Part shown: positions 12,301 through 64,000 of the stretch, piece after piece
How the letters are laid out: each line of letters begins with the position of its first letter
Numbering within the stretch: position 1 is the first letter of the stretch
Assembly (NCBI GenBank): GCA_964035545.1
Contig: OZ037773.1
Coordinates: 525,751 to 589,750, forward strand
DNA: 64,000 nucleotides
Reading direction: 5' to 3'
DNA from: Bugula neritina
Lineage: Eukaryota; Animalia; Bryozoa
The notes under the pieces: generated by a model
What the model was told of the DNA's origin: nothing
The model's input: only the letters and a program-made list of their open reading frames with translations
The model's database searches: none
Made by a program: the position numbers and the translations under genes

Positions 12301-13782
12301 GCTCACTACTCTATAACCTTAGCTCTTTACTACATAGCCCTAGCACCTGGTAAATATGGCCAATATTGAGTCTTTACTTAACCCCCCCTCCTGTTTTATA
12401 TACGTATATAGCTTAGACATAGCTCTGTTATGGGTTGGCGTACCAGCAGTCACACAGCCTGTGTCATTCTGTCTGAAGAATGGATATCATGTTCATAGAG
12501 AGTCAAGATTGGCCAATAAACAGACTTTATGTCTGGTTTCCAAAGAATTCAGACGCTAAGGTCAGAGTCTCACGAAGTCTGGAGTAAAATACAGGAGAAT
12601 TCCCCATCCCACCCTACTTTGCAGCCACTAAGGCGAAGAACTAAAACTCTCTGCAATAGAAAAGGTGTTCACCAGAGGTTAAATCTCTCTCACTCAAGTA
12701 GACTTCTACAGATATATTTCCTACAAGAGCTACAAAAGATGGTGGGAGAAGTTGTAGGAAAATGTTTTTTGTACTCTCGCTTTTCAGATGTGTGTTGATT
12801 GAAGTAAGGTATATCAACAATGCTATATTTCTTTGGATACTACCACATATGCCTTGTACATTCACACATCACCAATACTCACGTGGGCGGCCTTTCATAG
12901 CATTTCCATACGGAATCAATGCTTTGCCCAGTGTGATCGGTGGTTTTGCAGAGCCTGCATGCCAACTTGGGTGACTATTCAAATGATTCAGCAAAAGCAT
13001 GCTGACAACCTCGGTCACTCAGCATCATAATTGACAGCATTTGTGTCTCTTGCTGACAAGTTGAATTGCAAACATTTTATGCTATTATGTAGTAGGAACA
13101 TGTACCTTGACCACCTCATACCCATGTGTATGCCTATGACCACAAGCCAACTACATGAATTTAAAACCTTAAAAAATTAGCTTCTATATATGGTGAGTCA
13201 GAAAATAGTGGTATGGTACCAACCTTGTCGGTAAGCTAGACTGGCAGCAGGGGACATTAGTGATGCTGTTCCATTAGCTGCCCCTGAAGTCCCGGACAGC
13301 ATGGAATGTGCAGCTACTCCACCAAAACCTCTAGTGGCGGCAGCAAAGTCCATAAAGTTAGCTGGAGGAACTCCCGGGCTGGGCTTAGCCTCTCGGTGGA
13401 AGGGTAGGGCGGCTGGTGAAGGCATTGTGTCTTTGAGAAAGGACAACTCCTGTACATTGCTAGGTAGTTTGTCTTGTGGAGTCAATGGAGGCTTAGCAGG
13501 AGAGTGGGTCGAACTTTTGTATAAACGTCCTGCTGGTTTTGGGATTGAAGTGTCATTGGATAAGCATAGGTTAGATTTTATTTGTTTGACCTCCTCAATA
13601 ATAATGTCAATACGATCACTGCCTTCATAGTTGACGCATCCTCGGCATACAGTCTCCGAGAAATCTCTCAGTAGTGTCCATGGCATTCGTGGAAGGTCGC
13701 ACAAAAAACATTGTTCCCGGTTTGCTGGTTGGGCCAAAGTAGCTACTGCTCCTCTGGTTGACGAACTTTTATATGCTGACAT
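397..13782 (-). CDS. IRF2BP: Interferon regulatory factor 2-binding protein (IRF2BP1/2/L family, Drosophila Pits-like), 8 coding exons, about 602 aa
   Basis: Exons (minus): 13224-13782, 5851-6020, 5374-5547, 3443-3613, 2596-2902, 1824-1885, 1229-1400, 397-590. All introns are GT-AG with matching phases; 1809 nt in total. Motifs: N-terminal C4 zinc finger ([14 protein letters not shown]...[14 protein letters not shown]); middle domain (GRVFAVDA...[23 protein letters not shown]...[11 protein letters not shown]...[12 protein letters not shown]); C-terminal C3HC4 RING ([37 protein letters not shown]...VFCPSGKRC...VPWAFM). Confidence 0.95.
1680..1812. repeat. Degenerate (ACT/AGT)n trinucleotide tract
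   Basis: Runs of gtagtagcactagtactacta in IRF2BP intron 6, starting about 12 nt past the donor at 1823. Confidence 0.75.
3255..3436. repeat. Minisatellite, unit about 20 bp (cacagatagtgacaggtggt)
   Basis: Degenerate tandem copies abutting the IRF2BP exon 4 donor (3442). Confidence 0.8.
4893..5402. repeat. 44-bp minisatellite, about 11 copies, built from the IRF2BP exon 3 end plus its splice donor
   Basis: Unit tatacatatatacctggccagttcctagggggtattctatatac; period 44 (4921 to 4965). The terminal copy is the coding sequence IEYPLGTGQ|gtatat. Confidence 0.95.
7936..8300. repeat. 14-bp minisatellite (tgtcccctaccctg)n
   Basis: About 26 copies; accounts for ORFs 7927, 7947 and 8087. Confidence 0.95.
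8455..8990. repeat. 38-bp minisatellite (ctagcactaccatcactgcaactactaacactatataa)n
   Basis: About 12 near-perfect copies, decaying on the right. Confidence 0.95.
9142..9688. repeat. 11-bp minisatellite (acacacagtat)n
   Basis: About 50 copies; produces the [11 protein letters not shown] and CVYCVYTV ORFs in all six frames. Confidence 0.95.
10874..11210. repeat. (GAGT)n microsatellite with an internal block duplication
   Basis: gagtgagtgagt run. The block beginning gtgtgtgagcaggagagtaagcg and ending gagggcgagtgtgtgag occurs twice. Confidence 0.9.
12088..12345. repeat. 21-bp minisatellite (gctcactactctgtagcctta)n
   Basis: About 12 copies; accounts for ORFs 12075 and 12088. Confidence 0.95.
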
Positions 13783-16764: not shown

Positions 16765-17454
16765 TTTGTTTAACTTAATAAATCTGTTGATTGTGACAAT
16801 AGTTTGATTGTTGGGAAAAATGTACAAACAACCATAATAGGAAATTTACTGTCTTATTGTTGCAACTAACCTCTACATGTAATTTTGTATATATTTCTTA
16901 TATGTTATATATTTAATACTGCAATGATTGTTGCAATTGCCAAGGATATCATTTTTCTTTTACTTTAAGTAAGAAGTTGTGTTCTCTAAAAATAATATTG
17001 CCCAATGCTTAACTTTATGCTTTTGAGTTGCCACTCATAAAGAAAAGTGTATTTTATTGAAAACGTGTTGAATTTGCTCTAAATGTCAGAGCCTTGATAG
17101 AATATATATATATAAGATATTTTTTTATATAAACAATTATTTTGCATGAATACACACCAAAAATTGTATCTAAGCTTGCCAACATAATAGCTTCCTATAA
17201 GGTAATTAGTTCAATATGGATTCCATTTTTAGCATACTTTTGAAATGTATTATACTTATTTAAATTAAAATTTTTATGTATATATGAGCCTTGCATATAA
17301 AAAAGATGTTAAAATATCATAATATGTCATATTTTATAATAAATGTTTTATTGTTATATTATATCATGTCACATGCTTGTGCATGGGTCACAGCAGTTTC
17401 ATGCAAAACTACAAGAGTTGAATTCTGCCATATTTGCTTTTTGCCTGCTTCCAG

Positions 17455-18680
17455 AGTGGAGATATGTGAGTATAGTATAATAACCTAGATAGTACAGAGT
17501 AGAGAGTATAGTATAATAACCTAGATAGTACAGAGTAGAGAGTATAGTATAATAACCTAGATAGTACAGAGTAGAGAGTATAGTATAAAAACCTAGATAG
17601 TACAGAGTAGAGAGTATTGTATAATAACCTAGATAGTACAGAGTAGAGAGTATAGTATAATAACCTAGATAGTACAGAGTAGAGAGTATAGTATAATAAC
17701 CTAGATAGTACAGAGTAGAGAGTATAGTATAATAACCTAGATAGTACAGAGTAGAGAGTATAGTATAATAACCTAGATAGTACAGAGTAGAGAGTATAGT
17801 ATAATAACCTAGATAGTACAGAGTAGAGAGTATAGTATAATAACCTAGATAGTACAGAGTAGAGAGTATAGTATAATAACCTAGATAGTACAGAGTAGAG
17901 AGTATAGTATAATAACCTAGATAGTACAGAGTAGAGAGTATAGTATAATAACCTAGATAGTACAGAGTAGAGAGTATAGTATAATAACCTAGATAGTACA
18001 GAGTATAGAGTATAGTATAATAACCTAGATAGTACAGAGTAGTGAGTATAGTATAATAATCTAGATAGTACAGAGTAGAGAGTATAGTATAATAACCTAG
18101 ATAGTACAGAGTAGAGAGTATAGTATAATAACCTAGATAGTACAGAGTAGAGAGTATAGTATAATAACCTAGATAGTACAGAGTAGAGAGTATAGTATAA
18201 TAACCTAGATAGTACAGAGTAGAGAGTATAGTATAATAACCTAGATAGTACAGAGTAGAGAGTATAGTATAATAACCTAGATAGTACAGAGTAGAGAGTA
18301 TAGTATAATAACCTAGATAGTACAGAGTAGAGAGTATAGTATAATAACCTAGATAGTACAGAGTAGAGAGTATTGTATAATAACCTAGATGGTACAGAGT
18401 AGAGAGTATAGTACAATAACCTAGATAGTACAGAGTAGAGAGTATAGTATAATAACCTAGATAGTACAGAGTAGAGAGTATAGTATAAAAACCTAGATAG
18501 TACAGAGTAGAGAGTATAGTATAATAACCTAGATAGTACAGAGTAGAGAGTATAGTATAATAACCTAGATAGTACAGAGTAGAGAGTATAGTATAATAAC
18601 CTAGATAGTACAGAGTAGAAAGTATAGTATAATAACCTAGATAGTACAGTGTAGAGATAGGTGAGTATGGTATAATAACC
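17455..18680. repeat. 36-bp minisatellite (agagtagagagtatagtataataacctagatagtac)n
   Basis: About 33 highly homogeneous copies; accounts for the 335-aa ORF 17409-18416. Confidence 0.97.
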
Positions 18681-31487: not shown

Positions 31488-33345
31488 TTAGTTACTCTGG
31501 CCATGACACTTGTACTTCCAGATGAAGAATGAGGAGACGTTCAGGATTGCCATAAACACAAGAAAGCCAACAACGTACACAGCATCCAGTCTGTAGGGAT
31601 AATCCTTCAGCACTGAAATTATACAACATAGTCTAGAGCTGAAATGTTCCCTAATTTCAACTCATTTAAACCTGAAAAGTTGGTGAAACATCAGTTGGCA
31701 TAAATGACAACTTTATTTTAGGCTTTTACTAAAAAAACTCCAAATAAAATGTTTAACACACTGATTAGATGAGCAACAACAAACTAATATGATACTATTG
31801 GCTAGTATTCCAAATAACAAGGTGAAAGGCATTTACTAATATTTCCTATAAAACTATAAAGTTTATAATCACCATCCCTGTGAGAAAGGATTTTTGTTAA
31901 ATCAAGCTAAAGACTTATTCAGATGGGGCACAAGAGAATTTAGAGAATATTGATATTAGAACACAGGCCAAGACAAAACTATTCAAACATTAAGAGAACC
32001 AATAAGACTATGTGCAACACAGCAAAATAACATTTTAAACAATGAAGATATGCTCAAACAAATGATTGTGAGAACAGTTACCAACAATTGGCATTACACT
32101 GATTGAATTTATTTGTAAACTATATACTGATAATGTTAACTGTAAGTTTTTGGAGGCTTTTTCAAGGTGAAATTTAATTTTGATACAAGTCAGCCTGTGT
32201 CTAGACAGGGAAAGTAAATCAAGGAAATATCTGAGCTGAATGACTATGAGTTTTATCACATTGTCCTTGTGCTTGTGTGAGGGCATGGGGTTAGGATTTG
32301 AATTTTTTGAATTGTTCAAATTGAAAGCCCATCTAATATACCATCATAACTAATTTGAAAACATCTTTGATCCAGCAAAATGAAAATCCATTAATTTTTA
32401 GCAAAGGTTCAAATTAAAGCAAAATTTAATACAATTACAAGTACATACTAGTAAATCTTACCAATTAATATTATCGTAATTATTGGACTTAGTATTATAA
32501 TTAAAGTATGAGTATGAGTACCAGTATCATTATCAATTTGAGTATCTCTCTTATCCGTTATCACTATATTTTTTATCACTAGCATGACTAATCACTATCA
32601 GTATCAGTAATGAGTTTGAGCTGATGGTCAATGATGGTAGTACTAGTAACACTAACATATTGATATAGGTCATACCCACTGTTATGAGATAATAAATTTA
32701 TTAAAATTAAATGACAGTTAAGAAATTGTACCCATAGTCACTATCATAGATGACAATGTGAGTGTATCATCATCACTATCAGCATGAGCATCACTATGAC
32801 TCTCAATGTCGGTGTAACTTGACCTGTATTAGATGTGACAATCACTATGAGTATGAGTAAGAAAAAACCATAGTGATAGCAATATTTGATACGTGAGTGT
32901 CATATTTATCGTGAAAATTGAATATCAAACTCGGTCAGTCATTCACTTTCACATTGTCATAAATACAACTATGAATTAAGCACAAGCCCAAGGTGATTGT
33001 CATTACAGTTACACTTACTTAATACATTTGCCTTTGGCTTTGCGACGCTAACACTAACAGTAACAGTTAATTATCATAATAATGATAATCATAATGATAA
33101 TACTGTCACTGTTATACTCAATTTTTATCTTATAGTTCTACTCACTACTCAGTATTATTAGTACTACTACGGCTACTACTAGTACTACTGCAACTTCAAA
33201 TTCAAGTTCAACTTGAAGTTGAACTTCATTTTCAACTTGTGTCAAATTGAAATTAGCCTAAACACTTACCATGGCGAGCTGCATAACATCCTTGTTGCAA
33301 AAAGCATACCATGATTGAAAGCACAGTTAACATCTTAGTATACAT
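31488..33345 (-). CDS. 66-aa single-pass membrane microprotein with signal peptide (family not recognised)
   Basis: join(33270-33345, 31488-31612). Donor CATG|gtaagt, acceptor ataatttcag|TG, phase 1/1. Translation: MYTKMLTVLSIMVCFLQQGCYAARHVLKDYPYRLDAVYVVGFLVFMAILNVSSFFIWKYKCHGQSN*. It has a hydrophobic leader, a TM segment of about 22 aa and a basic stop-transfer WKYK. Confidence 0.75.
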
Positions 33346-33861: not shown

Positions 33862-36800
33862 ATGTCTTATTTTTATAAATCAATTGATAAACAAGCAGTT
33901 AAAGGTTTTATTTGTGAGGATCTGCGAGTTTTTGGCATTAAAGTACCCAAATTAGAAAAGCTCGAGAAGAAATCTGTAGCTGAAAGTGAATATCAATCTC
34001 AATCTGGGTCTGATATTCATTCCGTAGATGCTAGAAAAACATCATCATCACACATACAAGTAAGAAAATTTTTTGATTGTAACGTTTGTGTTGAATGTGT
34101 GGCCATTGTGTATAGTATTTATTATGAAATACGTTATTGATTGCTGATTTAAATTATCGAGCAAACTGACTGACTGATTTAATTATTTGATAATAAAATA
34201 TTTATTAGAATGAAAAACAGCGTGGTGGTTTTGTATAATATGAAACGGAAGAGAAGGTAAACAAGTATACAGCGATTCTAGTAAAGCAATTAGTTAGCAT
34301 ATTGTCACGTGATTGTCATGAATGTGATTAGCGATAGGATCGCATGATTGTTTCTCAACACGCCCCCTCAAGCATGTGATTCGATAGCTAGTAGCTCCAG
34401 GGCAATTCTGTGATTGGTTTTAGGCAAGCTCTTAGTCATGACATTGGCGGGGTTCTGAGCTCCTCTGATGTGTTGGTATGCTATGGTGGTTTGCTCTCTG
34501 ACAATGTGGAATCTAATGTCAATGTGTTTGCTCCCCTGATGTAAGTATGGTTGTCCCTTAGTGAGGGCAATGGCTCCAAGGTTGTCAGTGAAAAGTGTGT
34601 TAGGGTTAGGCTGTTTCATCTTGAATGTTTTGCACAAAGTCTGTAGGAATAGCATCTTCTTTGTGGCTTCGGCTAATGCCATGTATTCGGCCTCGCATGA
34701 TGATAAGGCCACTGTGGGTTGTCGTCGGCTGTTCCAACTTATAGGGGCTCCACCCAGGGTGAATACATATCCTGTTGTTGATCTTCGTGTGGAGGTTTCT
34801 CCACCCCAATCTGCATCCACATAGCCCACTAGTTCTTGTTGATTGGGAGTGAATCTCAGATTAAATCCTTTTGTACCTTTAAGGTATCGTAGCAGCCGTT
34901 TCAAGGCAGCAATATGTGCAGGTCCAGGTCTTTCTAGGTGTTGGGAGAGCTTCCCAATGATCCATGCTAGGTCTGGACGTGTGGCGGTCATCAGGTATAT
35001 GAGAGAACCTATAACTTGTCTGTAGGGGTAGTCCTTTGAACGCTCATATTCGTCGTCTGTTGCTTTTTCTAGTTGTAAGTCCTTTTCAGCAGGAGTATAT
35101 ACAGGGTTGCAATCTGCCATATTGTAGGTGTTCAGCAGTGTGTCTATGTAGCGCTCCTGTGACATAGTGTACTGGTCCTCATGTCTCTTGAAGTCTATCC
35201 CCAGGAACCAGCTTAATTCTCCTCTATCATCCATGTTGAATTTTTGTTGCATCATAGATTTGGTTTGTGTGATTCTGTTGTCGTCTCGGCAGCAGAGAAG
35301 GATGTCATCAACCCAGAAAAGAATGATGATGTTGGCTGATTTATCTGAAGGGTCCTCTTTTGAGTATAGACAAGGGTCTCCAGCACCAGGTGTGAAGCCT
35401 TGCTCCTTGAGGAAAGTGGTCAGTGTTTGGTGCCAATTGCGTCCGCTTTGCTTGAGGCCATAAATGGATTTGTTGAGACGACAAGAAAGCTTCCCTTGTT
35501 TGTTGGTTTCTTCGTACCCTTCAGGCTGTTGTAGATAAATTTCCTTATCGATTGGTGCGTTTAGGTACGCTCCTTTAACATCTAGTTGATGTATTTTCAT
35601 GTTTTCATTTGCTGCTTTCTGTAACAGCAATCTGATGGATGTGAATCTGGTGGTTGGACTGTAAGTTTCTTCATAGTCAACTCCTTGTATTTGTGAAAAT
35701 CCTTTTGCTACATATCTAGCTTTATGTTGAGTTTCACCTGGCGTTTTTCCCTGTTTGAGGGTATAAACCCATCTGCCCTTGGTCTCTGTCCTGTCTTCAG
35801 GTAACGGCTGGATAGACCAGGTGTTTGAATCACGTAGGGTGTTTATTTCCTTGTCCATGGCTTTCTTCCAGGCTTCTTTATCTTTTGAATTTACAGCTTC
35901 TTGGTAGGACTGTGGTATGTTTGCCATCAGTGAGCAAGCATAGTCAGTGTCTTCTATGTCATAGTCCTGTAGGTATGTAGGAGGCTTTCGTTTCCGTTCC
36001 GATTTACGTGGTCCAGGTTGGTTGGTGGCCTTTGCCGGATCTGGTGCAGGTTCTTGTGGCATGGTATTCTGAGTACCATTTCTGCTGTTTAGTGCGGGTC
36101 CTTGTGGCATGACGTTCATTGCGTCATTTCCGCATATTTGTGCAGGTTCTTGTGGCATGGTATTCTGAGTACCATTTCTGCTGTTTTGTGCGGGTCCTTG
36201 TGGTATGACGTTCATTGCGTCATTTCCGCATATTTGTGCAGGTTCTTGTGGCATGGTATTCTGAGTACCATTTCTGCTGTTTTGTGCGGGTCCTTGTGGT
36301 ATGACGTTCATTGCGTCATTTCCGCATATTTGTGGTATGACATTTCTGGATGTAACAATTTTCTGATTAGGGGTAAGTATAAGGTAGCCTTGGGCCTTTG
36401 TGTTGACACCAAGATATATGCCGCTTTGTCCGCGGTCACTGAGTTTTAACTTATTTCCCTCTGAGTAGAATGTGCATTGGGATCCAAAATTGTGGATTTT
36501 CCTCATGTCGGGTAGCGTGCCTGTGAATAATTCATAGGCTGTCTTTCCCGTCCGTCTCTGGTAGCTTCGGTTTCTTAGGTACTTGGCATGGTCAGCGGCG
36601 AAACTCCAGAAAGTCTTGGGGAGATTTGAATCTTTGAGTAGGCATCGTGCTGTGTCCATTATGGTGCGCCAAGTCCTCTCTGATTTACCATTCTGGTAGG
36701 ATGAGTAGGGTGCTGTAGTGGTGTGTTTGATTCCCCTCTCGCGTAGCACGGCTTCAAATGGCTGTCCAAGGTACTCCATGCCGTTGTCAGTATGGATCTC

Positions 36801-39800
36801 CTTCACATCTCCTATAGGTGCCACATCTGCAATGAATTGCTTAAGTGCAGTGGTGGCATCACTTTTGTGGCGTATATTGTAGGTGAACAACATACTGGAA
36901 AATTCATCTATGAAGTTTATTATGTAGTTTTGTCCTCCTCTAGCAGTTGGTGTGATGGGTCCGCATAAGTGAGAGTGTACACGTTGTAGAGGCTGTGTAG
37001 CTAGTTCAGGTTTATCGTCTTGTTTGTGAGGTTGTTTGGTGATTTTACTTTCGTCACATGTCTTGCATGCAATTTTTAATTTTGCTCCAGTTATGGTCAT
37101 ACCTGTTGTCACTTTCTCCAGCTCAATTATGTCATTGGTGTTCATATGACCCAGTGCCCTGTGCCAATCGGGCAGCGATTTTGCGGTGTTTATTGAGTCA
37201 CCTGTATGGGTTGTCTTGAGGAAGTACAATCTGCCTTTGGGCATAATTGGAAAAGTTGTCTTGTCGACTGTCAGTATATTTTTCTCTCTAGAGAAATGTA
37301 CTTTTGCCCCTTTTTGTGTGGCGGCGTGGACTGAAAATAGGCTTGTTGGTATTGTTGGTGCTAGCAAAGCGTCTTTTAGATGAATCTGCTGCTCCATATT
37401 GTTGTCATCAGTAATAGTAAACTGTGCTGTGCCTTTGGCTACAGCCAGCTTGTTTGTTTTGCGACCATCTGCCATCTCTATGTAGTGGTTCTCAGGCGTG
37501 AAGCTCTTATCAAAACTAATGAAGTTGTTCTCATTGTTCACCAGATGACTTGTCGCTCCGCAGTCCACCATAAGCAACTGTCCTCCTTGAGATTTATTTT
37601 GTGTGGCTATGTTGCATTGGTTTGATGTATTCACAGTGAAGGCATATGTGGCATTTGCCGATGAAATTTCAGTTTTACTTGTCTTCTTCTTTGTCCAGCA
37701 AACTGATTCGATATGTCCAGCTTTCTTGCAGTAGTTACAAAATAGTTTGTGCTTTGAGTAACAATCTGTTGAAGAATGATTGCTTTTACCACAAGCAGTG
37801 CATTGTTTATCACGTTTGCTAGTGGGTTTGAAATTGTCTCTTCCTTTAAATACCATGGCTGTAGATTGAGAGCACCTTGCCGACTCAGTAAGGTCAAAGT
37901 TGGTTAGAGCTGCTTTGAACTCTGATAGGGTTTGGTTTTTGTCAAGTTGCGTATGTACTACAACAAAAGGCTGGTAGGATGTTGGTAATCCTTTCATAAT
38001 CATTGCGATCACCAAATTGTCACTAATATTTTCCCCAGCAGACTTGAGGCCTGCTGAGTAGTTCTCAGCACGAATCAGGTAATCTGTAATGTCTTCTGTA
38101 TCATTCATTTTTACAGTTGTAAGTTGTTCATAAAGAGTTAATACTCTAGGCTTTTGTGTACTTGCATAGTGTTCTTTTAGAATTTTGAATGCTTTTCTTC
38201 CATCGTCTTTGGCATCTCTCATCACAAGTTGAAGAGACTTTTCGTCTAAAACTTGTACAAGCTCAGCGTAAGCTCGCTTATTCTTTTTGTTGAAGTCAGC
38301 AGCGTTATCTTCTCCTTCTTCTTTGGGTAGAAGTGCGGTGTGTACTCCTTCATCTTGTGTGTACAAGTATGAAGTGAATCTTGTTTCCCAAATTGAGAAA
38401 TTGTTTGAATCACCATCAAAGAGAAGCCTGTGTTTGAAGCCACTGGGCCCATAACCTGTTGAATGTGTGGCCATTGTGTATAGTATTTATTATGAAATAC
38501 GTTATTGATTGCTGATTTAAATTATCGAGCAAATTGACTGACTGATTTAATTATTTGATAATAAAATATTTATTAGAATGAAAAACAGCGTGGTGGTTTT
38601 GTATAATATGAAACGGAAGAGAAGGTAAACAAGTATACAGCGATTCTAGTAAAGCAATTAGTTAGCATATTGTCACGTGATTGTCATGAATGTGATTAGC
38701 GATAGGATCGCATGATTGTTTCTCAACAGTTTGTAGTTATGTAACTTTTTCTTTAAGTTTATCTATTCAGATTTTAGTATAAATTTTTTAATCATCATAA
38801 TGATAATCAGATCATAATGAAATCGATATCATTATTAATAACTTAAAGTCAAACTATAAGTATAATAACTATAAGAATAATCACTATGATTAATACTATT
38901 ATCAAATTCAATATCATTATAATTGCCATTATAATCATTATTATTATAGTGATTATTATTATTATTATTTTGTAATTGATTATTGATATCGTAATATAGT
39001 CATATACTGTTAGTGTTACTGTTAGTGTTACTGTTAGTGATACTGTACTACGTCTACGACTACTGTATACCAATACAATTAAGAATTATTATCATTATGA
39101 TTATGACTAATTTAAATTACTACTAGTACTATTAGTACTATTAGTGCTAGTACTATTATTAGTGTTAAATTTGATATTACTATGAGTAGGACTATGACTA
39201 TGACTATTGGCAATCACAATAGAATGAGTATTACATTTACTATCACAGTATCACTATCAGTATGAATATGACTATGACAAAAATAAACTTTAGGGCGAGG
39301 CTAAAGTACAATACATTAAAGTGAAAATAATAAATGTTTTGATTTACTTTTCGTTGAGCATTAAATCGAAATTAATCATTAAATTAAAATTTAATAATTC
39401 ATTATCACAAATTTGTTATGATTCTCATTACGAATATCAATGCACTAGAAGTGAAAATAGAACTAAAGTAAATATCTATAAGTAACTGTAAAGTGTGATA
39501 CTTATTAATAGTGATAGTTATACTCATACTTATGCTAAGTTTTAATTTAATATTTTATAGTAATACTAATAGTAAATAAACATTAATAAGTTATGAATGT
39601 GTATATGTATTATATAAATATAGTTTGATGGTTATGATTATAATAATACTTTATTTATGTTTTTAATTAATAATATAATCATGATTATAATATTTATAAT
39701 CATGTTATCATTAAAATTATAATTACTTAGTAATGAATATATATGATAGTATTAGTATAAGTATATAATCATTACTTGCTATCTATAAATATATCCCACT

Positions 39801-42800
39801 ACCTGAACAGGACAAAGCCAAGATAGGCGAGGATATATAAATATAGCGACCTTTTTAATTTATTTAGCAAATTGAAATGTCAAAATTCACATTCGTAATT
39901 AGTATTCTTTTAAATACGAGTAAATTAAAAATAACTTTCCATTTGGCTTAAATTGTAAATACTAAATAGATTGAGTTTTTTATCTTATTTTCAATGATTA
40001 AATGATTTTTTCAATGATTAAATGAATTATCAAGTTTTATTGTGACTCTTATAATAGAGATAGTATACCAACAGTTTAGTAGTTCTTATTAATGTAATAC
40101 TTTATAACATAATTTAAGGGTATTAGTAAACTAGCTACTACCTCTTATTGACTAATAGGTTATTGTTATTTCTAATAGTAATAAATGTGTTCTCATATTC
40201 ATTCTGCATGTGGTTATAGTAATTACTATAACTAGAGCTGTTGCTAAAGTAAATATAGAGCTACTAAATATTACCATCGTATTCTACTATCTTGAGTGAT
40301 ACATTTAATAATGTATGAGTGTGACTAGTGAGTCTAGTGCTAGGTATACTCAAGTCTGATGATTTGAGACTGGTTTGTAAGCTTAGTTATTAGATCAGTA
40401 TATGAGTATATACATCAACATTGCTATAAGTAAGTATACATATAAATTAGTTAATGGCATGCTGCTGTTCTTTGTCATCTTGTTTAGAGATTAAATATGA
40501 TACTGAGGTGGAGTAAAATGAAAATGCTCAATTATTCAATTACATTTATATGTTTTTATACCCGAAAAACCCTTTAATTATAAAAGGTAATACCAGAAGG
40601 GTTTTCAAAGTTTTGCTTCAGGCATCTTTTATTGCATTTGCAAAACAATGACTCGTTCTTCTGAACATGGTGAATCAGGTGACGTCTAGTTGTGAAATAT
40701 TTGGCAATATTAGCTGTTAGCAGGTGATGCAGACCAACTTATCTTTAATAGTGATTGTCAATAAAAAGTAGCTTCAGTGTAGGAACATATGACCAGTATA
40801 GGCAGGATAGGTGTCAGAATCACTATGTTGCCCACCTTTGCATTATTTGAATAGATTTTTTATTTGATGTTTGTAAACAGTTGCATTGAATGAAGCCACA
40901 ATCATAAGTTCATGAAAACGGAAGCCACAAATTTCTCTTAGAGTGTCCATTTGCATAATACGAAGTCAGGGAAACCAGTGAAAGTAAACATTGATATTGA
41001 AGTTTGTTCATTTCATTTCTGGTTTTAATTAACATTAGCATGCAATTGATCATAATTTATATTCTCAATAAATATAGCATGTCTTATCTGATTTCACTCA
41101 ATTTACTTTATGGCTTTAGAAAAACCGGAATGGCCTTGTGTTTGGTGTGCCTCTGTCTTCTATGGACTCCATCGAGGATCCAAACATAGGACATGTACCA
41201 AAGTAAGTGTCTGCTGCTGCTGCTGCTGCTGTACTGCAACCCCTTTCGCTCATAGTTACTACATAAAGTGTGCAGAGTAATGAACTGAGCAGTAGTAAAG
41301 TTACTTGATTCAAAGCTGTGTCAATGTTGTACGGAATATGGAGTGACTGGACCGAGTAGCGTGGAGTTATGCATCCTTTACAATATAGAGTTGTTATCTT
41401 GAAGTGTCTTCTGCTAATTAAGAGTTATATTTTTATTGTAAAACACAAGAATCTCATGTTATAGGGAAGTATTGGTTTTTTTTGGGTATTTCTGTCCTTG
41501 GACGTTTTTCAGACTGAAGGTTGGAATCAGTTATCTGCAAGCTCTTTGATGGTACAAAAAGTGGACTCTCAGGTGTATCATGTATCAACATGTGTTTTAT
41601 TTATCAACATGCATATTTTAATACTAAACAGGTTTTTGGCCAACATAAGGCAGTACCTGTCTGCCCACCTGGATAAAGAAGGACTGTTCCGGAAGACAGG
41701 CTCTGTGGCGCGTCAAAAGGATCTGGTTGTGAGTTGTCTCCCCTTGTCTAGTCAATGTTATTGTGTGTAGCTGCTATGTACTTGATAATAGTGGCTAAGG
41801 CAGTCCATGTCAAACAGCTTTAGTACTTATAAATTTATCTATTGTTTTTCAAATTGTTTTAATAAACCTTACCAGTTGATGCTATAGTCTATTATATTAC
41901 ATTGTATTATAAGATTAATAGTCATCTAATATTAGTAATTTTGTAATATAGCGTGTTATGGGTTTTGTTAGCATTTTTGCGTTTCTATGTTGTTTCTACT
42001 GTTGCGTATGTTATAGCAATATATAGAGGAGAGCGAGGGAAAAATCAGAGAGGACTCTCAGGTGTATGATGTCACCAGCGTCATTAAACAGTTCTTCAGA
42101 GAATTGCCTGAACCCCTAATTCCTTACATCCTGCAGGTGCTGTCTTTGTCTTGAATCTCCCACCCAATTAGTTTTCATATGCTCTTGTAAACGTTTCAAC
42201 AGTTGCAATTACACGGGTGTTACTTGTGCAGTGATTAGGTGTAAGCAGCAGTAAGTCACCATCTGTTTCTCTGCAACTCTCTCTTTAGCCAAACACTCAA
42301 GTAGAGCATCATACATTCAAGAGTTTAACCTGTAGAGCTCTGTCAACCATTCTATCATTACTAGAGTCTGACTAGAGCTCTGTGACTTGAAATAATCCAT
42401 CTGTTAGATATATGTAATGATGAAAGCATTAACATCAGCTTCCTTCATGAAGTGGTGATCCGCTGTATCGTGTTGAATAGTTTCTCTAGCTTCTGACATC
42501 AGTGGAATGAATGTGGAAAACCGCTTGGTCAACAACTTATAGTTGGGGAAAGGGACGACAACTCCAAACAGAAATAAAACTAATCATTGTGATACTAGTA
42601 CTTATACTTGTGTGCCTCTTAATGTAACAGTGAGAGTTGTGCTGCAGTGGACATGATTTCTCTGCAGGAAGCGTTTGTGCAGGCCGCCCAGCTGTCGTCT
42701 GCAGACAGCAAGGTCTACTCTCTCAACTTGCTCTGTCTGCTGCTACCCCCTTCCCATCTCTCTGTGTTCCGCTATGTTCTGGAGATACTCTCTGACGTGT

Positions 42801-45800
42801 CCAGCAACTGGCAGGTACTGAGCACTGTGATGTCATTTTCTCTCTTCAGCTGATTCTTTCATCTGTTGTTCAAGTTTTGTTATAGATTCAAGTCTGTTGG
42901 TGTCTTTATAGTAATATGACAATGGAGATGTTGAGTCACCACTCTGTGTCCACCAGAGTCGTGACTCAACACGCAGAATACACAACTGCTGAGGATAGGC
43001 AATAAGTTCTTATAGCTTGAGGGAATGTTGTATCTTGTGCTTTTCAGCAAGTGAAAATAATTGTCACCTAAACAGTTGAATGAGTAGAATTGTTGTCGTT
43101 TAAATTCAGGTGAATAAGATGACGGCCCACAACATAGCTGTGTGTCTCACTCCTAACCTTTACCACTCCAAACCCAACTGTAAGCAGATCCAGTTGCAGA
43201 CAGAGACTGTGGAGATCTGTATCGACAACGTCATCAACATAGGTCAGCATTTCCTCTCGTCACTCCCTGTATCATTACACCACTGTGTACCTTAGCAACT
43301 ACCCCCTGTATCATTACACTACTGTATACCTTAGCAACTACCCCCTGTATCATTACACCACTGTGTACCTTAGCAACTACCTCCTGTATCATTACACCAC
43401 TGTATACCTTAGCAACTACCCCCTGTATCATTACACTACTGTATAGCTTAGCAACTACCCCCTGTATCATTACACCACTGTATAGCTTAGCAACTACCCC
43501 CTGTGTCATTACACCACTGTATAGCTTAGCAACTACCCCCTGTATCATTACACCACTGTATACCTTAGCAACTACCCCCTGTATCATTACACCACTGTGT
43601 GTCTGTGTGAACTACTACAGTGAAATAGCTTGACTTAGATGTATACTAGATAAACCGTTTTCCTGTAGCATGTGGTACTCAAACATGAGTTTGTCTTTTA
43701 CTTTTCATAGTAGTTTGAAGGGAGTAACCCCCACTGTCATACTACAGTGAAGTGACCCCCACTGTAGTATGATTACAGTGGGGGTTACTTATAACCAACA
43801 AGATGGACCAATTGACAAACCCCACACTCCCTGCTGGGATTTAAACCCCTGACCCAGTGCCTACGTGGTCAACACTTGATATTCTCTGGTTGTTCTCATG
43901 TTGATAAGATTTGTCTCCCCACTGTGTATGTTATGGTATACTAACAGGAGTTGTTCCCCCGTCGATTATGGAGAAAGTTGTGATGCTGAAGTCACTGGAA
44001 GACCACCAGCTGAGTAACTCGTCTGCTTTGGACCAATCAGCAGGAAGTGGTTCCGTGTCACTTCGGCGGAAGAAGCGTAGCGGGTCTCTTCAGGGTAAAC
44101 CTACACTAGACTATATTGTATATACTATACACTAGACTATATTGTATATACTATACACTAGACTATATTGTATATACTATACACTAGACTATATTGTATA
44201 TACTATACACTAGACTATATTGTATATACTATACACTAGACTATATTGTATATACTATATACTAGACTATATTGTATATACTATACACTAGACTATACTA
44301 GACTATACACTAGACTATACTAGACTATATAGTATATACTATACACTAGACTATATTGTATATACTATACACTAGACTATATAGTATATACTATACACTA
44401 GACTATATTGTATATACTATACACTAGACTATATTGTATATACTATACACTAGACTATATTGTATATACTATACACTAGACTATATTGTATATACTATAC
44501 ACTAGACTATATTGTATATACTATACACTAGACTATATTGTATATACTATACACTAGACTATATTGTATATACTATACACTAGACTATATTGTATATACT
44601 ATACACTAGACTATATTGTATATACTATACACTAGACTATATAGTATATACTATACACTAGACTATATTGTATATACTATACACTAGACTATATTGTATA
44701 TACTATACACTAGACTATATTGTATATACTATACACTAGACTATATTGTATATACTATACACTAGACTATATTGTATATACTATACACTAGACTATATTG
44801 TATATACTATACACTAGACTATATTGTATATACTATACACTAGACTATATTGTATATACTATACACTAGACTATATTGTATATACTATACACTAGACTAT
44901 ATTGTATATACTATACACTAGACTATATTGTATATACTATATACTAGACTATATTGTATATACTATACACTAGACTATATTGTATATACTATACACTAGA
45001 CTATATTGTATATACTATATTATTCACTATACTATTCACTATACTATATACTATCCCACTCTACTTAGCACTATACTATGCACTACACACTATACTACAC
45101 TATACACTACAGACTATACTATATGGTGTGTATTATACTGTAGATTATATGGTATATTATACTTGATAATGTTTCTGCTCTGTGTTATCACAAGATGTAA
45201 TTTATTATCTTGACAAACATTACCAAATAACAAGTAACTAACTTATCCCAACATCCTGCGAGAGTTAATATTCCCCTGCTATGAGTTGTGTCTGTTGTTG
45301 CCGTAGGGCTGAAGGATACAGGTATTTATACAGCATCAGCTGCTCCTACTAATATTACACTTCACTAGATATACTGCATTAGCTTGTCAACACTTCATAC
45401 AGGCTGGCAGGTGCTGACAGGTGGTTCTGTTTGTAGTCTAGAATATTTCATAAACTTCTTTGAGTTTTCAACTGATTCCAGTTTTGGATCTGAGTAGGAT
45501 ACAGGGTAGTATACTAAGTAATGTACTGATTGATATAACACCAACTCATTATCTACATCAAGCTAATCTTAGTCCTTTTGAAGTTGTGCTCTCATATTGC
45601 AATTCAAAATTGTAATAACGATCTGCTTTCATGAATTTCTTGCTACAAAATTTTCACCTCACTACATTGCAGTCCTATGTAATCCGGGATATTTATAGTT
45701 CGAAGTTGTCCCCGCCTATTGAAATGCAGAGAGAGCTTTGTTAACTTGCAGATGTTAACTCATCAGCAGTCTAATAAAACTTGTCTTATTGTTCTAATAA

Positions 45801-48800: not shown

Positions 48801-51800
48801 GGCACATATTGAGGAGAGGCAGACCAAACCACCCCACCGCAGGCCTGACTAAAGCTCGGCTACAGGCACTGGAGGCTTCTACTCCTCGCAATTCCGTCAG
48901 CAGTCTTCAGTCCTACATTGAACATGGTAGGTGTCTGTCTGAATGGATTCTAGTGTAGCTGGAACACAATGCTTTTATTTTCCTGGTTTTCAGTCAAGCA
49001 TCCAATTTGGGGAACCATTTCTCCTGTAGATAGCAAAGCCTAGCAATGGGTAAACATCAACTCCTGTTGATCGATTTTTAGTTGCAGAGCCATGAAATAG
49101 CTTGTAGATGTACAAATTGTAAGTTTTGTTTGGCTTCAGTTGAATTTATAGTAATATGGGTGAGGTGATAGTGGAGAATAACTTGCAATAGCAGAGTGGA
49201 AAATGAAAGGCTCAAGACAAGCTCACACTGGAAGATGAAAGGCTCAAGACAAGCTCACACTGGAAGATGAAAGGCTAAAGACAAGCTCACACTGGAAGAT
49301 GAAAGGCTAAAGACAAGCTCACACTGGAAGATGAAAGGCTAAAGACAAGCTCACACTGGAAGATGAAAGGCTAAAGACAAGCTCACACTGGAAGATAAAG
49401 GCTGAAGACAAGCTCACATTTGCAGAAGTGTTCCAGACTGTCATTTTATTCTCATCATTCTCATTTCTGTAGATGCTGTCATTGCTGCCGGTGTTGATCC
49501 ACTGCCTCAGTCCACCGAACCAAATGAAGCTCAAGACTGGGTCGAATGCGGAGTTGCGGAACCAGTCTACAAGAATGTGAGGCGCCATCGCCAACATCTG
49601 GTGGGTTTATTTGTTGTGTGGACAGAACCTGCAACTGTATGACTCATCATGCTCTAGCACTACTTAGCCTTAACTCACTTCTTCCTCTGGTATCCTGGGA
49701 ATTTATTGAAACCCAAAATTATACATGGACTTATCATGCAACATCTTATATATACACTGTAATATGTAATATATCATACACTATACTATACACTGTATTA
49801 TGCACGGTTTATAATATATCGGGCACTATATTTATACACTGGATTATGCACTCTATTGTCCACTATATCCTGTAATATATTGCACACTGTATGTGCAGGT
49901 CAGAGAAGACTCTTTTGACACACGGATGCAGGTGGTTGCCGGTGCCCACTCTTCTCTCTTCAAAGATCTCACTCACAACAAACCAGTACAGCGGGCTTCC
50001 ACCTCTTCTGTGTCAGGGGGAGCTACAGGAAGTAAGTAACTACTGCACATGCTCTGTAATGTATTTGAGGTTCATCATCATTTGTTTTAAAAATTTGCAA
50101 TATTCTATTTCTCACCTGTTGGTACTTGGTTATGTCTGTCACCTGTTGACACTTGGTTTTGTCTGTCAACTGTTGACACTTGGTTATAACACAGTCTCCA
50201 CTCACTAGCTCTGAAGCTTTTTTATAAGTATGTTATTATATATATTTATATGTATAATATTCTAGTGTATGTTGAACAAATCTGTTATTAACACACATCT
50301 ACCATAAAACACTTTGCTTAGAGCCTCCCAGACCAGAGAAGATGATTCCTGTAAAGAAACACAGTTCCGATGCTAAGCTCACCCTTACTCGGGCGTCAGC
50401 CACCACCCTTAAATCAGCTGAGGCAACTACCAGGTCCTTGTCTAAGTTAGAGGGAATCAGGTGCGTATTTACATCAGTGTCCTGAGTACATATTTCTAAG
50501 CCAGATGTTCAGTTGTCTGTTAGCTGGTTGAAGAGCTCTTTCGAGTCATGGTTGATTTTCTTCTTGGCTATTTTTGGCCAACATCATGGCTACTGTGACT
50601 TGCTAGGCCTACTCTTGTGTTATTAGAGCTTTTTATTGGCCATTTTTTGTCTATTAATTCTCATTCGGAATTATGTCCCCTGTTGAACCTAATCTCTGGT
50701 GTCAAATAGTGTGTTTCTCTTACTCAAGTTTACAGCTCTCTGGGCTGATATATTGATTGTGTTTTGTGCCATCATATAACATTTTATTATGAATCATTAC
50801 TGTGTATATACAATAGCTATGCTCTAACAATAATGGGATAATGTCTTGCAGTAGGTTCTAACAACTCATGCATTTTACTTTCATCCGCCAATAGCTTAGG
50901 ATACGTGCAACTGACTACATGATACTGTTGGTTGGTTTTAGCCCCATCTCTAACCTGGAAACAGAAGCTAGTTTATCCACCCCTGTCTCTAACCTGGAAA
51001 CAAACACTGATTTATCCACCCCTGTCTCTGACGAAGTCACGAGGAATGACCCTGTCTCAGCTGAGTGCAGTTATGAGAAGGTCAAGGACACAAGTGAACA
51101 ACCAAATGTTTCCCAGAATGCACTGCATAAATTAGTGGTACGTTTTCTAAGGCTGGTAATGTGTGGATTAGAGATGTGTATGTATATGAAGTAGTACTAG
51201 CAGTAGTAGTAGTAGTACTAGCAGTAGCAGTAGTAGTTTTAGCAGTAGCAGTGGTAGTAGTAGTAGTAGGAGTAGCGGTAGAGGTAGTAGTAGCGGTAGG
51301 TTAAGTAGTAGTTTCATGATATATCATACTACTAAGGTGCAGCTCTAGCTGTATTGAGAGTAAAGAGAAGTCAAGTAGAAGTCAAGTAGTGCAAGTGGAT
51401 TTAACCATATTTAATGACTGGATATGTTACCAGTGCTGTTGTGATGCTGTTATTCTGTTGCAGAGATTTTATTGGTCACCACCATGAAGTAAAACTTATT
51501 TATTTCCTAGGTCAAAGGTGCATCGGTTCATAAAATGACACATGCTGACAGTTTAGCTGACCTTCATGATGTGCGCCGGGTTCAAGATGTCAAGAGGTCA
51601 CTCAATCGACCCCAATTTCCTGAGCGGTCAGCCAGGTCACTGAGGCAAGCCCCTGTGAGGATACCCACTGTGTTTGCTAAGGGAGATCCCCGGGCTATGA
51701 GGTGAGAGAGAGGCTGTGAGGTGTGAGGCTGTGAGGTGAGAGGGAGGCTGTGAGGTGAGAGAGAGGCTGTGAGGTTAGAGAGAGGCTGTGAGGTGAGAGA

Positions 51801-53680
51801 GAGGCTGTGAGGTGAGAGAGAGGTTGTGAGGTGAGAGAGAGGTTGTGAGGTGAGAGAGAGGCTGTGAGGTGAGAGAGAGGCTGTGAGGTGATGGAGAGGC
51901 TGCGAGGTGAGAGAGAGGCTGTGAGGTTAGAGAGAGAGAGAGGCTGTGAGGTGAGAGAGAGGCTGTGAGGTGAGAGAGAGGCTGTGAGGTGAGAGAGAGG
52001 CTGTGAGGTTAGAGAGAGGCTGTGAGATGTATTCTGTTCACTGTAAGAGATATTGAAATATATGATACGCTGTAGAATTGATGCACTGGTCAATCTGACT
52101 GCAGGTACAAGATGGCTGCCGACGCTGTTCGTAGGCGGAGCTCCCAGGGAGCAGCAGACGGAGCGGAGAACAGGAGGAAGGTGTCACCTGCTGTTAACAA
52201 GCAGACGTCAGGTATGTGCTTAAGTTGCTCTTAAATGACTTGACTTGAAGCAGTCATCTATGCTGTGGTAGCTCTCCTGTCATTTGTCTGTTTGTCTGTA
52301 ATATTGCTTTAAAGAGTGTAGAAGAGATGCAATGAGTTTGTATTCATGGCTTAGGACAGTTTAAGTTTAATCCTAGACTTTGTTGACATAATAGTCAGTG
52401 TGAGCACTCCAGCAATGTTGCTGTAGATGAAACCAGCAGTGTGTGGATAAGATTCACCTGCCCAGTTAAATATAAGTATACGTTGAGTGACTCACAGACC
52501 ACGTTCTACGGAGTTAAGCATGTTTTCTCATTATGTAACTATGGTCGTTGTTTATACCAATAACATTTGACTTCCTATTGGTTGCTTAGCTTGCCCATGG
52601 CTTGACTTTAACGGCTAGATAACTTATTGCTCTCGGGATATGTTGATTAGGAATAACTTAAATGGAAACAAATAGAGACAGCAAAAATAACTTGCAATGT
52701 GTTTATGTATTTAGGTGTTGCCATGGAGACAAACAATTTAATACAAGCTTGTCTTTCGCCTCCCCTAAGAACAGTTGCCAAGACTGAGCCCTATATTCCT
52801 ATCTCAACAAATATAGTGAGAGGAGTGCTAGACAGCCCCTCCAAGGTTTGTTGGAATTAATGTTTCATTTGAACTGTGTTTGAGTGGTAACTTTTGTAGC
52901 CGAATCCCTCAGGAATTGTACAAAAGAAGCATTGCTTTTTATTGAGTTTGCATTTACAGGCTGTAATTTTTGTGGCCGTTGACTCATCAGGGATTTTAGT
53001 TCAGTTATTTTCTAGTGCACCTGTACTGATAGTCATTGGTGTGTTTTATTACATGACGCCTGTTAGGGCTGTCATTAGATATATGTTTTATTACAAGACA
53101 CCTGTTAAGGTTTTCATAAGTTGAATCAACTTCAGACGCATTTTATTTTCAATATAATGGATTCTTTGGCAACAGATTCAGTCTACTAGTGTATAAGTGA
53201 GAAATTCTCCGTTGTGCTCCAACAAGGCACACAACGCATTGCTTATTAAAGTTATATACCATTACCGCTGCTACGTTTATACATATTTAAAATAATATTT
53301 GTGTAATATTTTCTCATTTCTGGTTATAAAATATGCAATGTTATGTATATTATGTTATATGTAATAGTATATATTATGTAATATTATGTTATGTTTTTTA
53401 CTTTGCTGACTATATGTTGTAGCTAATGAGCCCCCAGTTCTCCAGCTGTAGGTCTCCTCTGAGGGAGCACTCACCCAACATCCCCCCTCCCTCAGCCCTA
53501 AACAGTATACCCAAGATAAAGTCGGCCATGTTGCCAGTTAACAACATAAAGATAGCTCCGCACACCTCCTCAGCTCCTTCTCAGTCGCCAAAGTCACACA
53601 AATCATCAGCCCCTAGATACACCCCCTACTCTAAGGAAAATTGCATCCGGCCTCCCAGGGCTAAACCTTCTGCATTGTGA
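33862..53680 (+). CDS. ARHGAP11A: Rho GTPase-activating protein 11A-like, 23 coding exons, about 1036 aa
   Basis: Exons: 33862-34059, 41120-41202, 41632-41728, 42017-42136, 42668-42814, 43110-43242, 43948-44094, 46060-46294, 46431-46504, 46631-46745, 46858-46969, 47901-48000, 48289-48347, 48578-48660, 48802-48926, 49473-49600, 49899-50031, 50322-50460, 50942-51137, 51511-51701, 52105-52211, 52715-52845, 53423-53680. Total 3111 nt with all phases consistent. N-terminal LRVFGIKV resembles ARHGAP11A. RhoGAP motifs: VFGVPL, EGLFRKTGS (Arg finger), IKQFFRELPEPLIP, NKMTAHNIAVCLTPNL. A long Ser/Pro/Arg-rich tail follows; tail exons are less certain than the GAP domain. Confidence 0.88.
34089..34360 (-). 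repeat. 3' LTR of the copia element
   Basis: tgttgaatgtg...tttctcaaca; identical to 38457-38728 except for one C/T difference (34166). Confidence 0.97.
34368..38474 (-). CDS. Copia gag-pol polyprotein (Gag-PR-IN-RT-RNase H), 1368 aa
   Basis: Two CCHC knuckles (CTACGKSNHSSTDC, CNYCKKAGHIESVC); protease VDCGATSH; IN HHCC (WHRALGH...CKTC) and core HTDNGMEY...NGKSER; RT KARYVAKGF, QLDVKGAYLN, SIYGLKQSGRNW, WVDD; RNase H YVDADWGG, EAEY, TDN, SKHIDIR. IN precedes RT, the copia order. Confidence 0.97.
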   Translation of the reverse strand: MATHSTGYGPSGFKHRLLFDGDSNNFSIWETRFTSYLYTQDEGVHTALLPKEEGEDNAADFNKKNKRAYAELVQVLDEKSLQLVMRDAKDDGRKAFKILKEHYASTQKPRVLTLYEQLTTVKMNDTEDITDYLIRAENYSAGLKSAGENISDNLVIAMIMKGLPTSYQPFVVVHTQLDKNQTLSEFKAALTNFDLTESARCSQSTAMVFKGRDNFKPTSKRDKQCTACGKSNHSSTDCYSKHKLFCNYCKKAGHIESVCWTKKKTSKTEISSANATYAFTVNTSNQCNIATQNKSQGGQLLMVDCGATSHLVNNENNFISFDKSFTPENHYIEMADGRKTNKLAVAKGTAQFTITDDNNMEQQIHLKDALLAPTIPTSLFSVHAATQKGAKVHFSREKNILTVDKTTFPIMPKGRLYFLKTTHTGDSINTAKSLPDWHRALGHMNTNDIIELEKVTTGMTITGAKLKIACKTCDESKITKQPHKQDDKPELATQPLQRVHSHLCGPITPTARGGQNYIINFIDEFSSMLFTYNIRHKSDATTALKQFIADVAPIGDVKEIHTDNGMEYLGQPFEAVLRERGIKHTTTAPYSSYQNGKSERTWRTIMDTARCLLKDSNLPKTFWSFAADHAKYLRNRSYQRRTGKTAYELFTGTLPDMRKIHNFGSQCTFYSEGNKLKLSDRGQSGIYLGVNTKAQGYLILTPNQKIVTSRNVIPQICGNDAMNVIPQGPAQNSRNGTQNTMPQEPAQICGNDAMNVIPQGPAQNSRNGTQNTMPQEPAQICGNDAMNVMPQGPALNSRNGTQNTMPQEPAPDPAKATNQPGPRKSERKRKPPTYLQDYDIEDTDYACSLMANIPQSYQEAVNSKDKEAWKKAMDKEINTLRDSNTWSIQPLPEDRTETKGRWVYTLKQGKTPGETQHKARYVAKGFSQIQGVDYEETYSPTTRFTSIRLLLQKAANENMKIHQLDVKGAYLNAPIDKEIYLQQPEGYEETNKQGKLSCRLNKSIYGLKQSGRNWHQTLTTFLKEQGFTPGAGDPCLYSKEDPSDKSANIIILFWVDDILLCCRDDNRITQTKSMMQQKFNMDDRGELSWFLGIDFKRHEDQYTMSQERYIDTLLNTYNMADCNPVYTPAEKDLQLEKATDDEYERSKDYPYRQVIGSLIYLMTATRPDLAWIIGKLSQHLERPGPAHIAALKRLLRYLKGTKGFNLRFTPNQQELVGYVDADWGGETSTRRSTTGYVFTLGGAPISWNSRRQPTVALSSCEAEYMALAEATKKMLFLQTLCKTFKMKQPNPNTLFTDNLGAIALTKGQPYLHQGSKHIDIRFHIVREQTTIAYQHIRGAQNPANVMTKSLPKTNHRIALELLAIESHA
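38457..38728 (-). repeat. 5' LTR of the copia element
   Basis: Adjacent to the PBS; contains the gag ATG (38474). Confidence 0.97.
43265..43600. repeat. 39-bp minisatellite (ccctgtatcattacaccactgtataccttagcaactacc)n
   Basis: About 8.5 copies starting about 22 nt after the exon 6 donor; accounts for ORF 43234-43587. Confidence 0.95.
44102..45020. repeat. 26-bp minisatellite (tacactagactatattgtatatacta)n
   Basis: About 35 copies starting 7 nt after the exon 7 donor. Confidence 0.97.
47418..47615. repeat. 29-bp minisatellite (tagcctgtgtaccttctctctttctcatt)n
   Basis: About 7 copies. Confidence 0.93.
49198..49420. repeat. 32-bp minisatellite (gaagatgaaaggctaaagacaagctcacactg)n
   Basis: About 7 copies ending about 50 nt before the exon 16 acceptor. 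Confidence 0.93.
51694..52026. repeat. 19-bp minisatellite (gctgtgaggtgagagagag)n, built from the ARHGAP11 exon 20 donor
   Basis: About 17 copies; the first unit is the real junction GCTATGAG|gtgaga. Confidence 0.95.

Positions 53681-62891: not shown

Positions 62892-64000
<1,109 letters not shown>

Follow-up and report, generated by a model that had tools for sequence, protein, structure and literature searches.

A predicted 66-residue membrane microprotein encoded head-to-head with a RhoGAP gene in Bugula-like bryozoans

The window, that is, the whole stretch of 64,000 nucleotides analyzed here, lies on contig C9 of the genome that was searched (G000, a 216-Mb assembly of 321 contigs). Two short minus-strand exons, read in the window sequence, join into a coding sequence of 201 nt for a microprotein of 66 aa, and a RhoGAP gene runs away from them on the opposite strand. 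The features of this part of the window are the following.

31488..31612, minus strand: exon 2 of the microprotein gene, 125 nt of coding sequence including TAA, with the motif D-Y-P-Y-R-L-D, a predicted membrane helix with an Asn, and the tail KYKCHGQSN
31613..33269, minus strand: intron, phase 1, GT-AG, 1657 nt, AT-rich with simple repeats
33270..33345, minus strand: exon 1 of the microprotein gene, 76 nt of coding sequence, with the start codon, the predicted signal peptide MYTKMLTVLSIMVCFLQQGCYA, ARH, and the first base of a split Val codon
33346..33861, no strand: interval between the divergent start codons, 516 nt
33862-34059, plus strand: first coding exon of the RhoGAP (ARHGAP11-like) gene, donor gtaaga at 34060
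34089..38728, minus strand: Copia-type LTR retrotransposon, 4.6 kb, in RhoGAP intron 1, 29 nt past the donor

The microprotein ATG is located at 33345 with an A at −3, and exon 1 ends as ATG/gtaagt at 33270/33269 (a slash within letters marks a splice or cleavage point). The acceptor of exon 2 is gtataatttcag/TG at 31613/31612, the exon following directly on tttcag; the split codon reads GTG (Val), and the TAA stop occupies 31490-31488. An earlier note on this DNA had described two in-phase minus-strand exons with strong splice sites, and their coordinates, phase, and 66-aa length read as it gave them. The open frames around exons 1 and 2 extend over 45 and 57 aa, respectively, and the exons are missing from the 60-aa list of open reading frames because neither frame reaches 60 aa. 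The nearest canonical AATAAA downstream of the stop is 1 kb away, a point against the gene model.

The choice of exon 1 was examined by listing every phase-1 candidate that runs from an ATG to a GT within 13 kb upstream of exon 2. The exon at 33345-33270 ranks at the top for donor match and hydrophobicity, and none of the other candidates is competitive. An upstream extension of exon 2 was rejected, as the residues before the acceptor differ between paralogues; it is also opposed by near-identical metagenome contigs of the paralogous (B) type described below, in which the pre-acceptor residues vary and the exon is invariant.

Homology searches of the microprotein gene were run exon by exon, with each exon used separately. 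Exon 2 has one other match genome-wide, on contig C3 (E 1.4e-7, 47% identity), and the acceptor of this paralogue, ttcaatttacag/TG, falls at the same codon position as in the window. We refer to the window gene as the A type and to the C3 paralogue as the B type. Between the two exon 2 sequences, the identities at the three codon positions are 0.71/0.71/0.29, with a pN of 0.33 and a saturated pS of 0.83; this pattern of substitutions marks selection acting at the protein level. A signal-like exon 1 lies 8.6 kb upstream of the paralogous exon 2, ending in ...GLAESKR with the phase-1 donor GAG/gtgaga. Profile searches with alignments A1 and A3, built from two and then five lineages, found no third family copy in the genome. 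When exon 1 of the window was searched against its own genome, it matched itself alone; the sequences of signal peptides change too quickly. The last 60 nt of the intron before exon 2 show 53% ungapped identity between the window (31553-31612) and L002:1433-1492, and the 3′ flank shows 35%. Either chance or a common branch-point or polypyrimidine context could explain the similarity at the intron end.

An orthologue of the C3 paralogue is already present in GenBank as KAF6023020.1 (EB796_018662, UniRef A0A7J7J9W9), a 69-aa hypothetical protein of B. neritina, which joins the exon 1 predicted for the paralogue to the paralogous exon 2 via a Val codon. The B. neritina annotation behind this entry was made by AUGUSTUS with transcriptome hints (PMC7576161). 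At the DNA level, the C3 locus is about 89% identical to B. neritina GCA_010799875.2, so that the searched genome belongs to a bryozoan near to this assembly but distinct from it, and not to human. KAF6023020.1 shares with the window protein the two exons, the phase-1 intron, a signal-like exon 1 ending 4 residues past a predicted Ala cleavage site, and the invariant D-P-R, GFL, M, N, and F-WK-K-G columns. Conversely, its exon 2 is only 47% identical to that of the window, its exon 1 can barely be aligned, and its tail has a Leu in place of the Cys. Nor is the genomic setting the same: its gene stands divergent to striatin, with an AMP-binding-domain gene nested in the intron of 8.6-8.7 kb.

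An exhaustive HMMER scan of 1.84 billion representative proteins, with a profile built from exon 2 of the window and of the C3 paralogue, gave three matches at E < 0.001.

P0001: 69 aa, 94 bits; KAF6023020.1
P0002 and its cluster-mates: 63-64 aa, 67 bits; ORFs called in prokaryotic style on metagenome contigs from ENA
P0003: 560 aa, 43.8 bits, E 1.6e-6; repeat-rich, matching profile positions 15-38 only

P0003 was judged not to belong to the family. The ORFs of the P0002 type span the intron end and exon 2 of a second taxon; from contig to contig, the intronic portion differs and the exon portion does not. In this taxon, an exon 1 ending in ...SVAESKR/G lies 8.2 kb upstream of exon 2, and a gene with an AMP-binding domain is found upstream in the opposite orientation, an arrangement shared with the C3 locus. 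The contigs share this synteny and the exon 1 and are therefore B-type orthologues. The earlier note had called the gene hidden. This holds for the A type, whose protein did not turn up among the 1.84 billion representatives or in the other protein collections as searched, in which records of very close genomes may be missing, but not wholly for the family, since the orthologue of its paralogue had been deposited.

Two observations were made on the surroundings of the B type. Its intron (8.2-8.7 kb) encloses a whole opposite-strand gene with an NPF-repeat N-terminus followed by AMP-binding-domain exons (L006:2700-9057, equivalent to G000 C3:4610300-4616656, and also L011, L014, and L015), an arrangement kept in B. 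neritina and the second taxon. In addition, it is divergent from the striatin gene at a distance of about 2.9 kb (L004:5481-5753, L011:1-2383). As the A type faces a RhoGAP gene and the B type faces striatin, both members stand head-to-head with an unrelated regulator gene.

The significance of the gene model was further examined in orthologues of the A type. A scan with the family alignment identified six metagenome contigs with an exon 2 at 65-69% aa identity to that of the window. In two contig groups, representing two taxa, the two exons, the phase-1 GT-AG intron, the position of the stop, and the divergent RhoGAP neighbour are all retained. In both groups, an AG acceptor stands two bases ahead of the first whole codon, and the protein ends in ...WKYKCHG(T/RS)N. 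Their first exons are as follows.

L020 exon 1, 6944-7016: MYAQIVAVFTIILGFIQSGCDAKR, donor GTA/gtaagt, phase 1, intron of 387 nt
L024 exon 1, 444-516: MFTKLLAFLSIVLCLFQESEATRH, donor ACA/gtaagt, phase 1, intron of 1741 nt

Exon 1 of L024 matches that of the window nearly position by position. At the DNA level, exon 2 alone aligns between the window and the A-type contigs, and the introns and flanks do not. For exon 2 of the window and L020, codon-position identity is 0.74/0.90/0.44, with a pN of 0.17 and a pS of 0.80; for exon 1 of the same pair, the values are 0.50/0.92/0.42, 0.32, and 0.65. The exon 1 pattern is as expected if hydrophobicity is kept rather than the exact sequence. In each of the six gene models, the intron is GT-AG and phase 1, and the coding length is divisible by three. 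The comparative check of selection and frame that the earlier note had proposed therefore favors a coding gene: synonymous sites are saturated while the amino acids are kept, and the six models contain no length-breaking change. The hosts of the metagenome contigs are presumably related bryozoans, as judged from synteny, and a literature search on the sample and locus accessions found nothing. Some of the samples hold both A-type and B-type contigs, so that the duplication predates the split of these taxa.

These comparisons bear on whether the two exons could be open frames paired by chance through splice-like sites rather than a gene. Both frames are short, the region is AT-rich with plentiful GT and AG dinucleotides, and the gene call is based on sequence comparison instead of direct expression, all of which would suit such a pairing. 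However, chance does not account for exons, intron phase, stop position, and neighbour being kept across taxa whose synonymous sites are saturated, nor for a paralogue with an annotated spliced orthologue, and we consider this explanation extremely improbable. By conservation, the two exons almost certainly represent a genuine protein-coding gene; the ranking of exon 1 and the paralogue and orthologue matches to exon 2, as sequence comparisons, far exceed chance. Genes this short routinely escape annotation, and a splice-aware reading combined with cross-species comparison recovers such a gene with high confidence from sequence alone.

The neighbouring gene is a RhoGAP gene, as its exons at 42017-42136 and 42623-42820 match Pfam PF00620 with 31.7 and 27.5 bits, compared with a gathering score of 24.5 bits. 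It may be ARHGAP11, given the N-terminal RhoGAP layout of that protein. Its first exon in the window aligns over 36 aa with a minus-strand exon of L020, at 61% identity and with an E of 3e-16. The distance between the two start codons is 516 nt (window), 438 nt (L020), or 376 nt (L024), and the genes are head-to-head in all three lineages. The suggested synteny check thus came out in favor of the divergent pairing. As for the earlier claim of a head-to-head arrangement with ARHGAP11, the divergent RhoGAP neighbour, its domain, and the pairing in L020 and L024 are confirmed, but the name itself is tentative. The 516-nt interval is probably a shared bidirectional promoter region, and the conserved pairing offers a simple handle on the regulation of the microprotein gene.

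The Copia-type element in RhoGAP intron 1 has 100% identical LTRs of 272 nt (TG...CA), an intact gag-pol frame of 1368 aa, and a 5-bp target duplication, GTTTG. An exact look-up of the frame gave no record. The insertion is recent and does not separate the two promoters. The coding frame of the element holds five overlapping 99-nt copies at a spacing of 48 nt (36044-36334).

Signal cleavage and topology of the product were read by the −3/−1 rule and by charge counting, and were compared over five lineages. In these lineages, exon 1 encodes a hydrophobic core of 12-16 residues with Ala at −1 and C/C/S/G/S at −3 (CYA/A, CDA/K, SEA/T, GLA/E, SVA/E). The first Met is conserved across the family, and the second Met of the window protein is not. 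The amino acid identity of exon 1 is 10-13/24, and its second codon positions are 0.79-0.92 identical. The junction table places the intron 3-5 codons past the predicted cleavage site in 6/6 models. The small −3/−1 residues that the earlier note had seen in the window protein are consequently a pattern of 5/5 lineages on this rule-based reading. From this pattern, a cleaved signal peptide and a type I orientation appear quite likely. If the N-terminal segment remained uncleaved, the 66-aa product would form a hairpin of two helices whose ends are both cytosolic. The first segment of the B type, with 15-16 hydrophobic residues, could indeed span the membrane. However, the h-region of the window protein comprises only about 12 residues, and signal peptides typically behave as this segment does across the five lineages, keeping small −3/−1 residues as the remainder drifts. 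A hairpin is therefore improbable in our view.

The part of the protein encoded by exon 2 was compared in alignment A3, which contains seven exon 2 sequences from five lineages. Its invariant columns are D3, P5, R7, Y12, G15, F16, L17, M20, N24, F29, W31, K32, K34, and G37. The predicted ectodomain reads L-K-D-Y-P-Y-R-L-D in the window, with a family consensus of D-[YFW]-P-x-R-x-[DH], and carries a net positive charge, which speaks against the type I orientation. The short ectodomain suggested from the window alone has thus gained an invariant D-x-P-x-R in five lineages. An invariant ectodomain motif, together with the dibasic K-R directly past the predicted cleavage site of the B type, could point to a membrane-tethered precursor from which the short ectodomain is released as a signalling peptide. 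This appears far-fetched: the A type shows R-H, or K-R in other registers, a processing site is missing between motif and helix, and the constraint on helix and tail equals that on the ectodomain.

Within the predicted helix, the polar Asn noted in the window is central and invariant across the five lineages. Conservation along the helix has a period of about 4 residues, with a peak at 90 degrees that was matched by 71/10,000 shuffles, which places the conserved residues on one helix face. From this conservation, we infer a helix-packing interface. It is conceivable that the interface serves self-association, with a homo-oligomer that either forms a small pore or channel or serves as a scaffold in the membrane. 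A polar Asn drives self-association of model membrane helices, the mid-helix Asn is invariant here, and the small residues G15, A/G21, and S/A/G27 lie on the conserved face with a period of about 4. However, the D-x-P-x-R of the ectodomain and the WK-K-G of the tail are as conserved as the helix, which better fits a structured partner, and we regard self-association as unlikely, albeit the more plausible of these alternatives.

The tail proposed earlier was basic, with a potentially palmitoylated Cys. Its basic character stands, as W-K-x-K, but the Cys is found in 4/5 lineages, and in G000 and B. neritina the B type has Leu at this position. Palmitoylation therefore cannot be essential to the whole family.

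We searched for known relatives of the family. A word-index protein search with exon 2 gave no candidate. Pfam searches with each exon and with all family members gave nothing above threshold, the sub-threshold membrane-helix noise consisting of YqfD (16.8 bits), FXYD (14 bits, one lineage), and OppC_N. In the ESM Atlas, the orthologue of the paralogue matched generic bacterial helices only, with scores ≤0.85. The earlier impression of an unrecognised family is sustained, with no named relative found in Pfam, PDB sequences, the ESM Atlas, or the HMMER scan. By these searches, this is a new small family, so far seen only in Bugula-like bryozoans, whose B-type member had already been deposited. 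Bryozoa, a phylum in which functional genomics is very sparse, thus gain a conserved membrane microprotein family that is constrained throughout.

The FXYD proteins (phospholemman, the Na,K-ATPase gamma subunit) deserve particular attention. Their general plan agrees with the layout predicted for the window protein, being small, type I, and single-pass, some with a cleaved signal peptide. Both have an acidic/aromatic/Pro motif in the short ectodomain just before the helix, conserved small residues along the helix, and a tail that is basic and carries a juxtamembrane Cys. In contrast, the F-x-Y-D motif is missing from the present family, and neither the central Asn nor the W-K-x-K tail is a trait of FXYD proteins. 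Where the FXYD pattern has two conserved helix glycines and a border Ser, the family has one invariant Gly (G15), A/G or S/A/G at the second position, and W-K at the border. The window exon did not match FXYD PF02038 at E up to 10, and the best score of any family member was 14 bits (E 0.033, only in the B type of the second species), compared with a gathering score of 26.9 bits. PF02038 searched over the whole genome selects neither family gene, and no FXYD chain was among the matches of PDB sequence searches. Membership in the FXYD family was rejected on these grounds. FXYD may still be the best working analogy for the mode of action.

Phospholamban, sarcolipin, sarcolamban, and DWORF are of similar size, and they regulate a P-type ATPase through lateral packing of a single helix. 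A functionally important Asn is likewise present in phospholamban and sarcolipin. These tail-anchored pump regulators differ from the window protein in having no signal peptide, a cytosolic N-terminus, a C-terminal helix, and almost no luminal tail, and sequence searches detected no similarity to them.

We propose the following mechanism. The signal peptide of exon 1 would direct the product into the secretory pathway, and cleavage after Cys-Tyr-Ala would leave a type I single-pass membrane protein of about 44 residues. Around 14 residues with the D-x-P-x-R motif would be exposed outside the cell or in the lumen, followed by one membrane helix with the invariant mid-membrane Asn and a conserved stripe every four residues, and by a basic cytosolic tail of 9 residues with the juxtamembrane Cys. 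Nearly all of the mature peptide is constrained, along one helix face, so that packing against a larger membrane protein is the most likely role. The peptide could pack beside a multi-pass pump, transporter, channel, or receptor as an accessory or regulatory subunit of the FXYD kind. This subunit role, drawn by analogy, is tentative, and we rate it somewhat below an even chance. The A type of the window and the B type of contig C3 arose by a duplication before the sampled Bugula-like taxa split, and the A type has stayed head-to-head with the RhoGAP gene, with which it probably has a promoter region in common. Overall, a real gene whose signal-peptide-bearing type I product serves as an accessory subunit, in a two-member family, appears to be the best explanation of these sequence patterns, with a probability of roughly 0.6. 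As a concrete candidate for such a small subunit with a regulatory role, the microprotein makes a search for its partner possible.

More speculatively, the family might be the bryozoan counterpart of FXYD-type regulators, either extremely diverged or independently invented, that tunes a P-type ATPase or ion transporter, with the A copy co-regulated with a cell-cycle RhoGAP via the conserved bidirectional promoter. We consider this analogy a long shot; if true, it would place the principle of signal-peptide-bearing single-pass regulation outside vertebrates.

Several further features are present in the window. Long minisatellite arrays at 7927-8369, 9082-9853, 17409-18416, 43184-43630, and 51695-52093 give rise to spurious open frames in multiple phases, and the array at 43184-43630 sits within an intron of the RhoGAP gene. 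On the minus strand, 13198-13782 holds an N-terminal zinc-finger exon of an IRF2BP-like gene. Also on the minus strand, an open frame at 63318-63851, beside a TA/TATATA microsatellite, resembles the endonuclease part of a non-LTR (LINE-type) retrotransposon.
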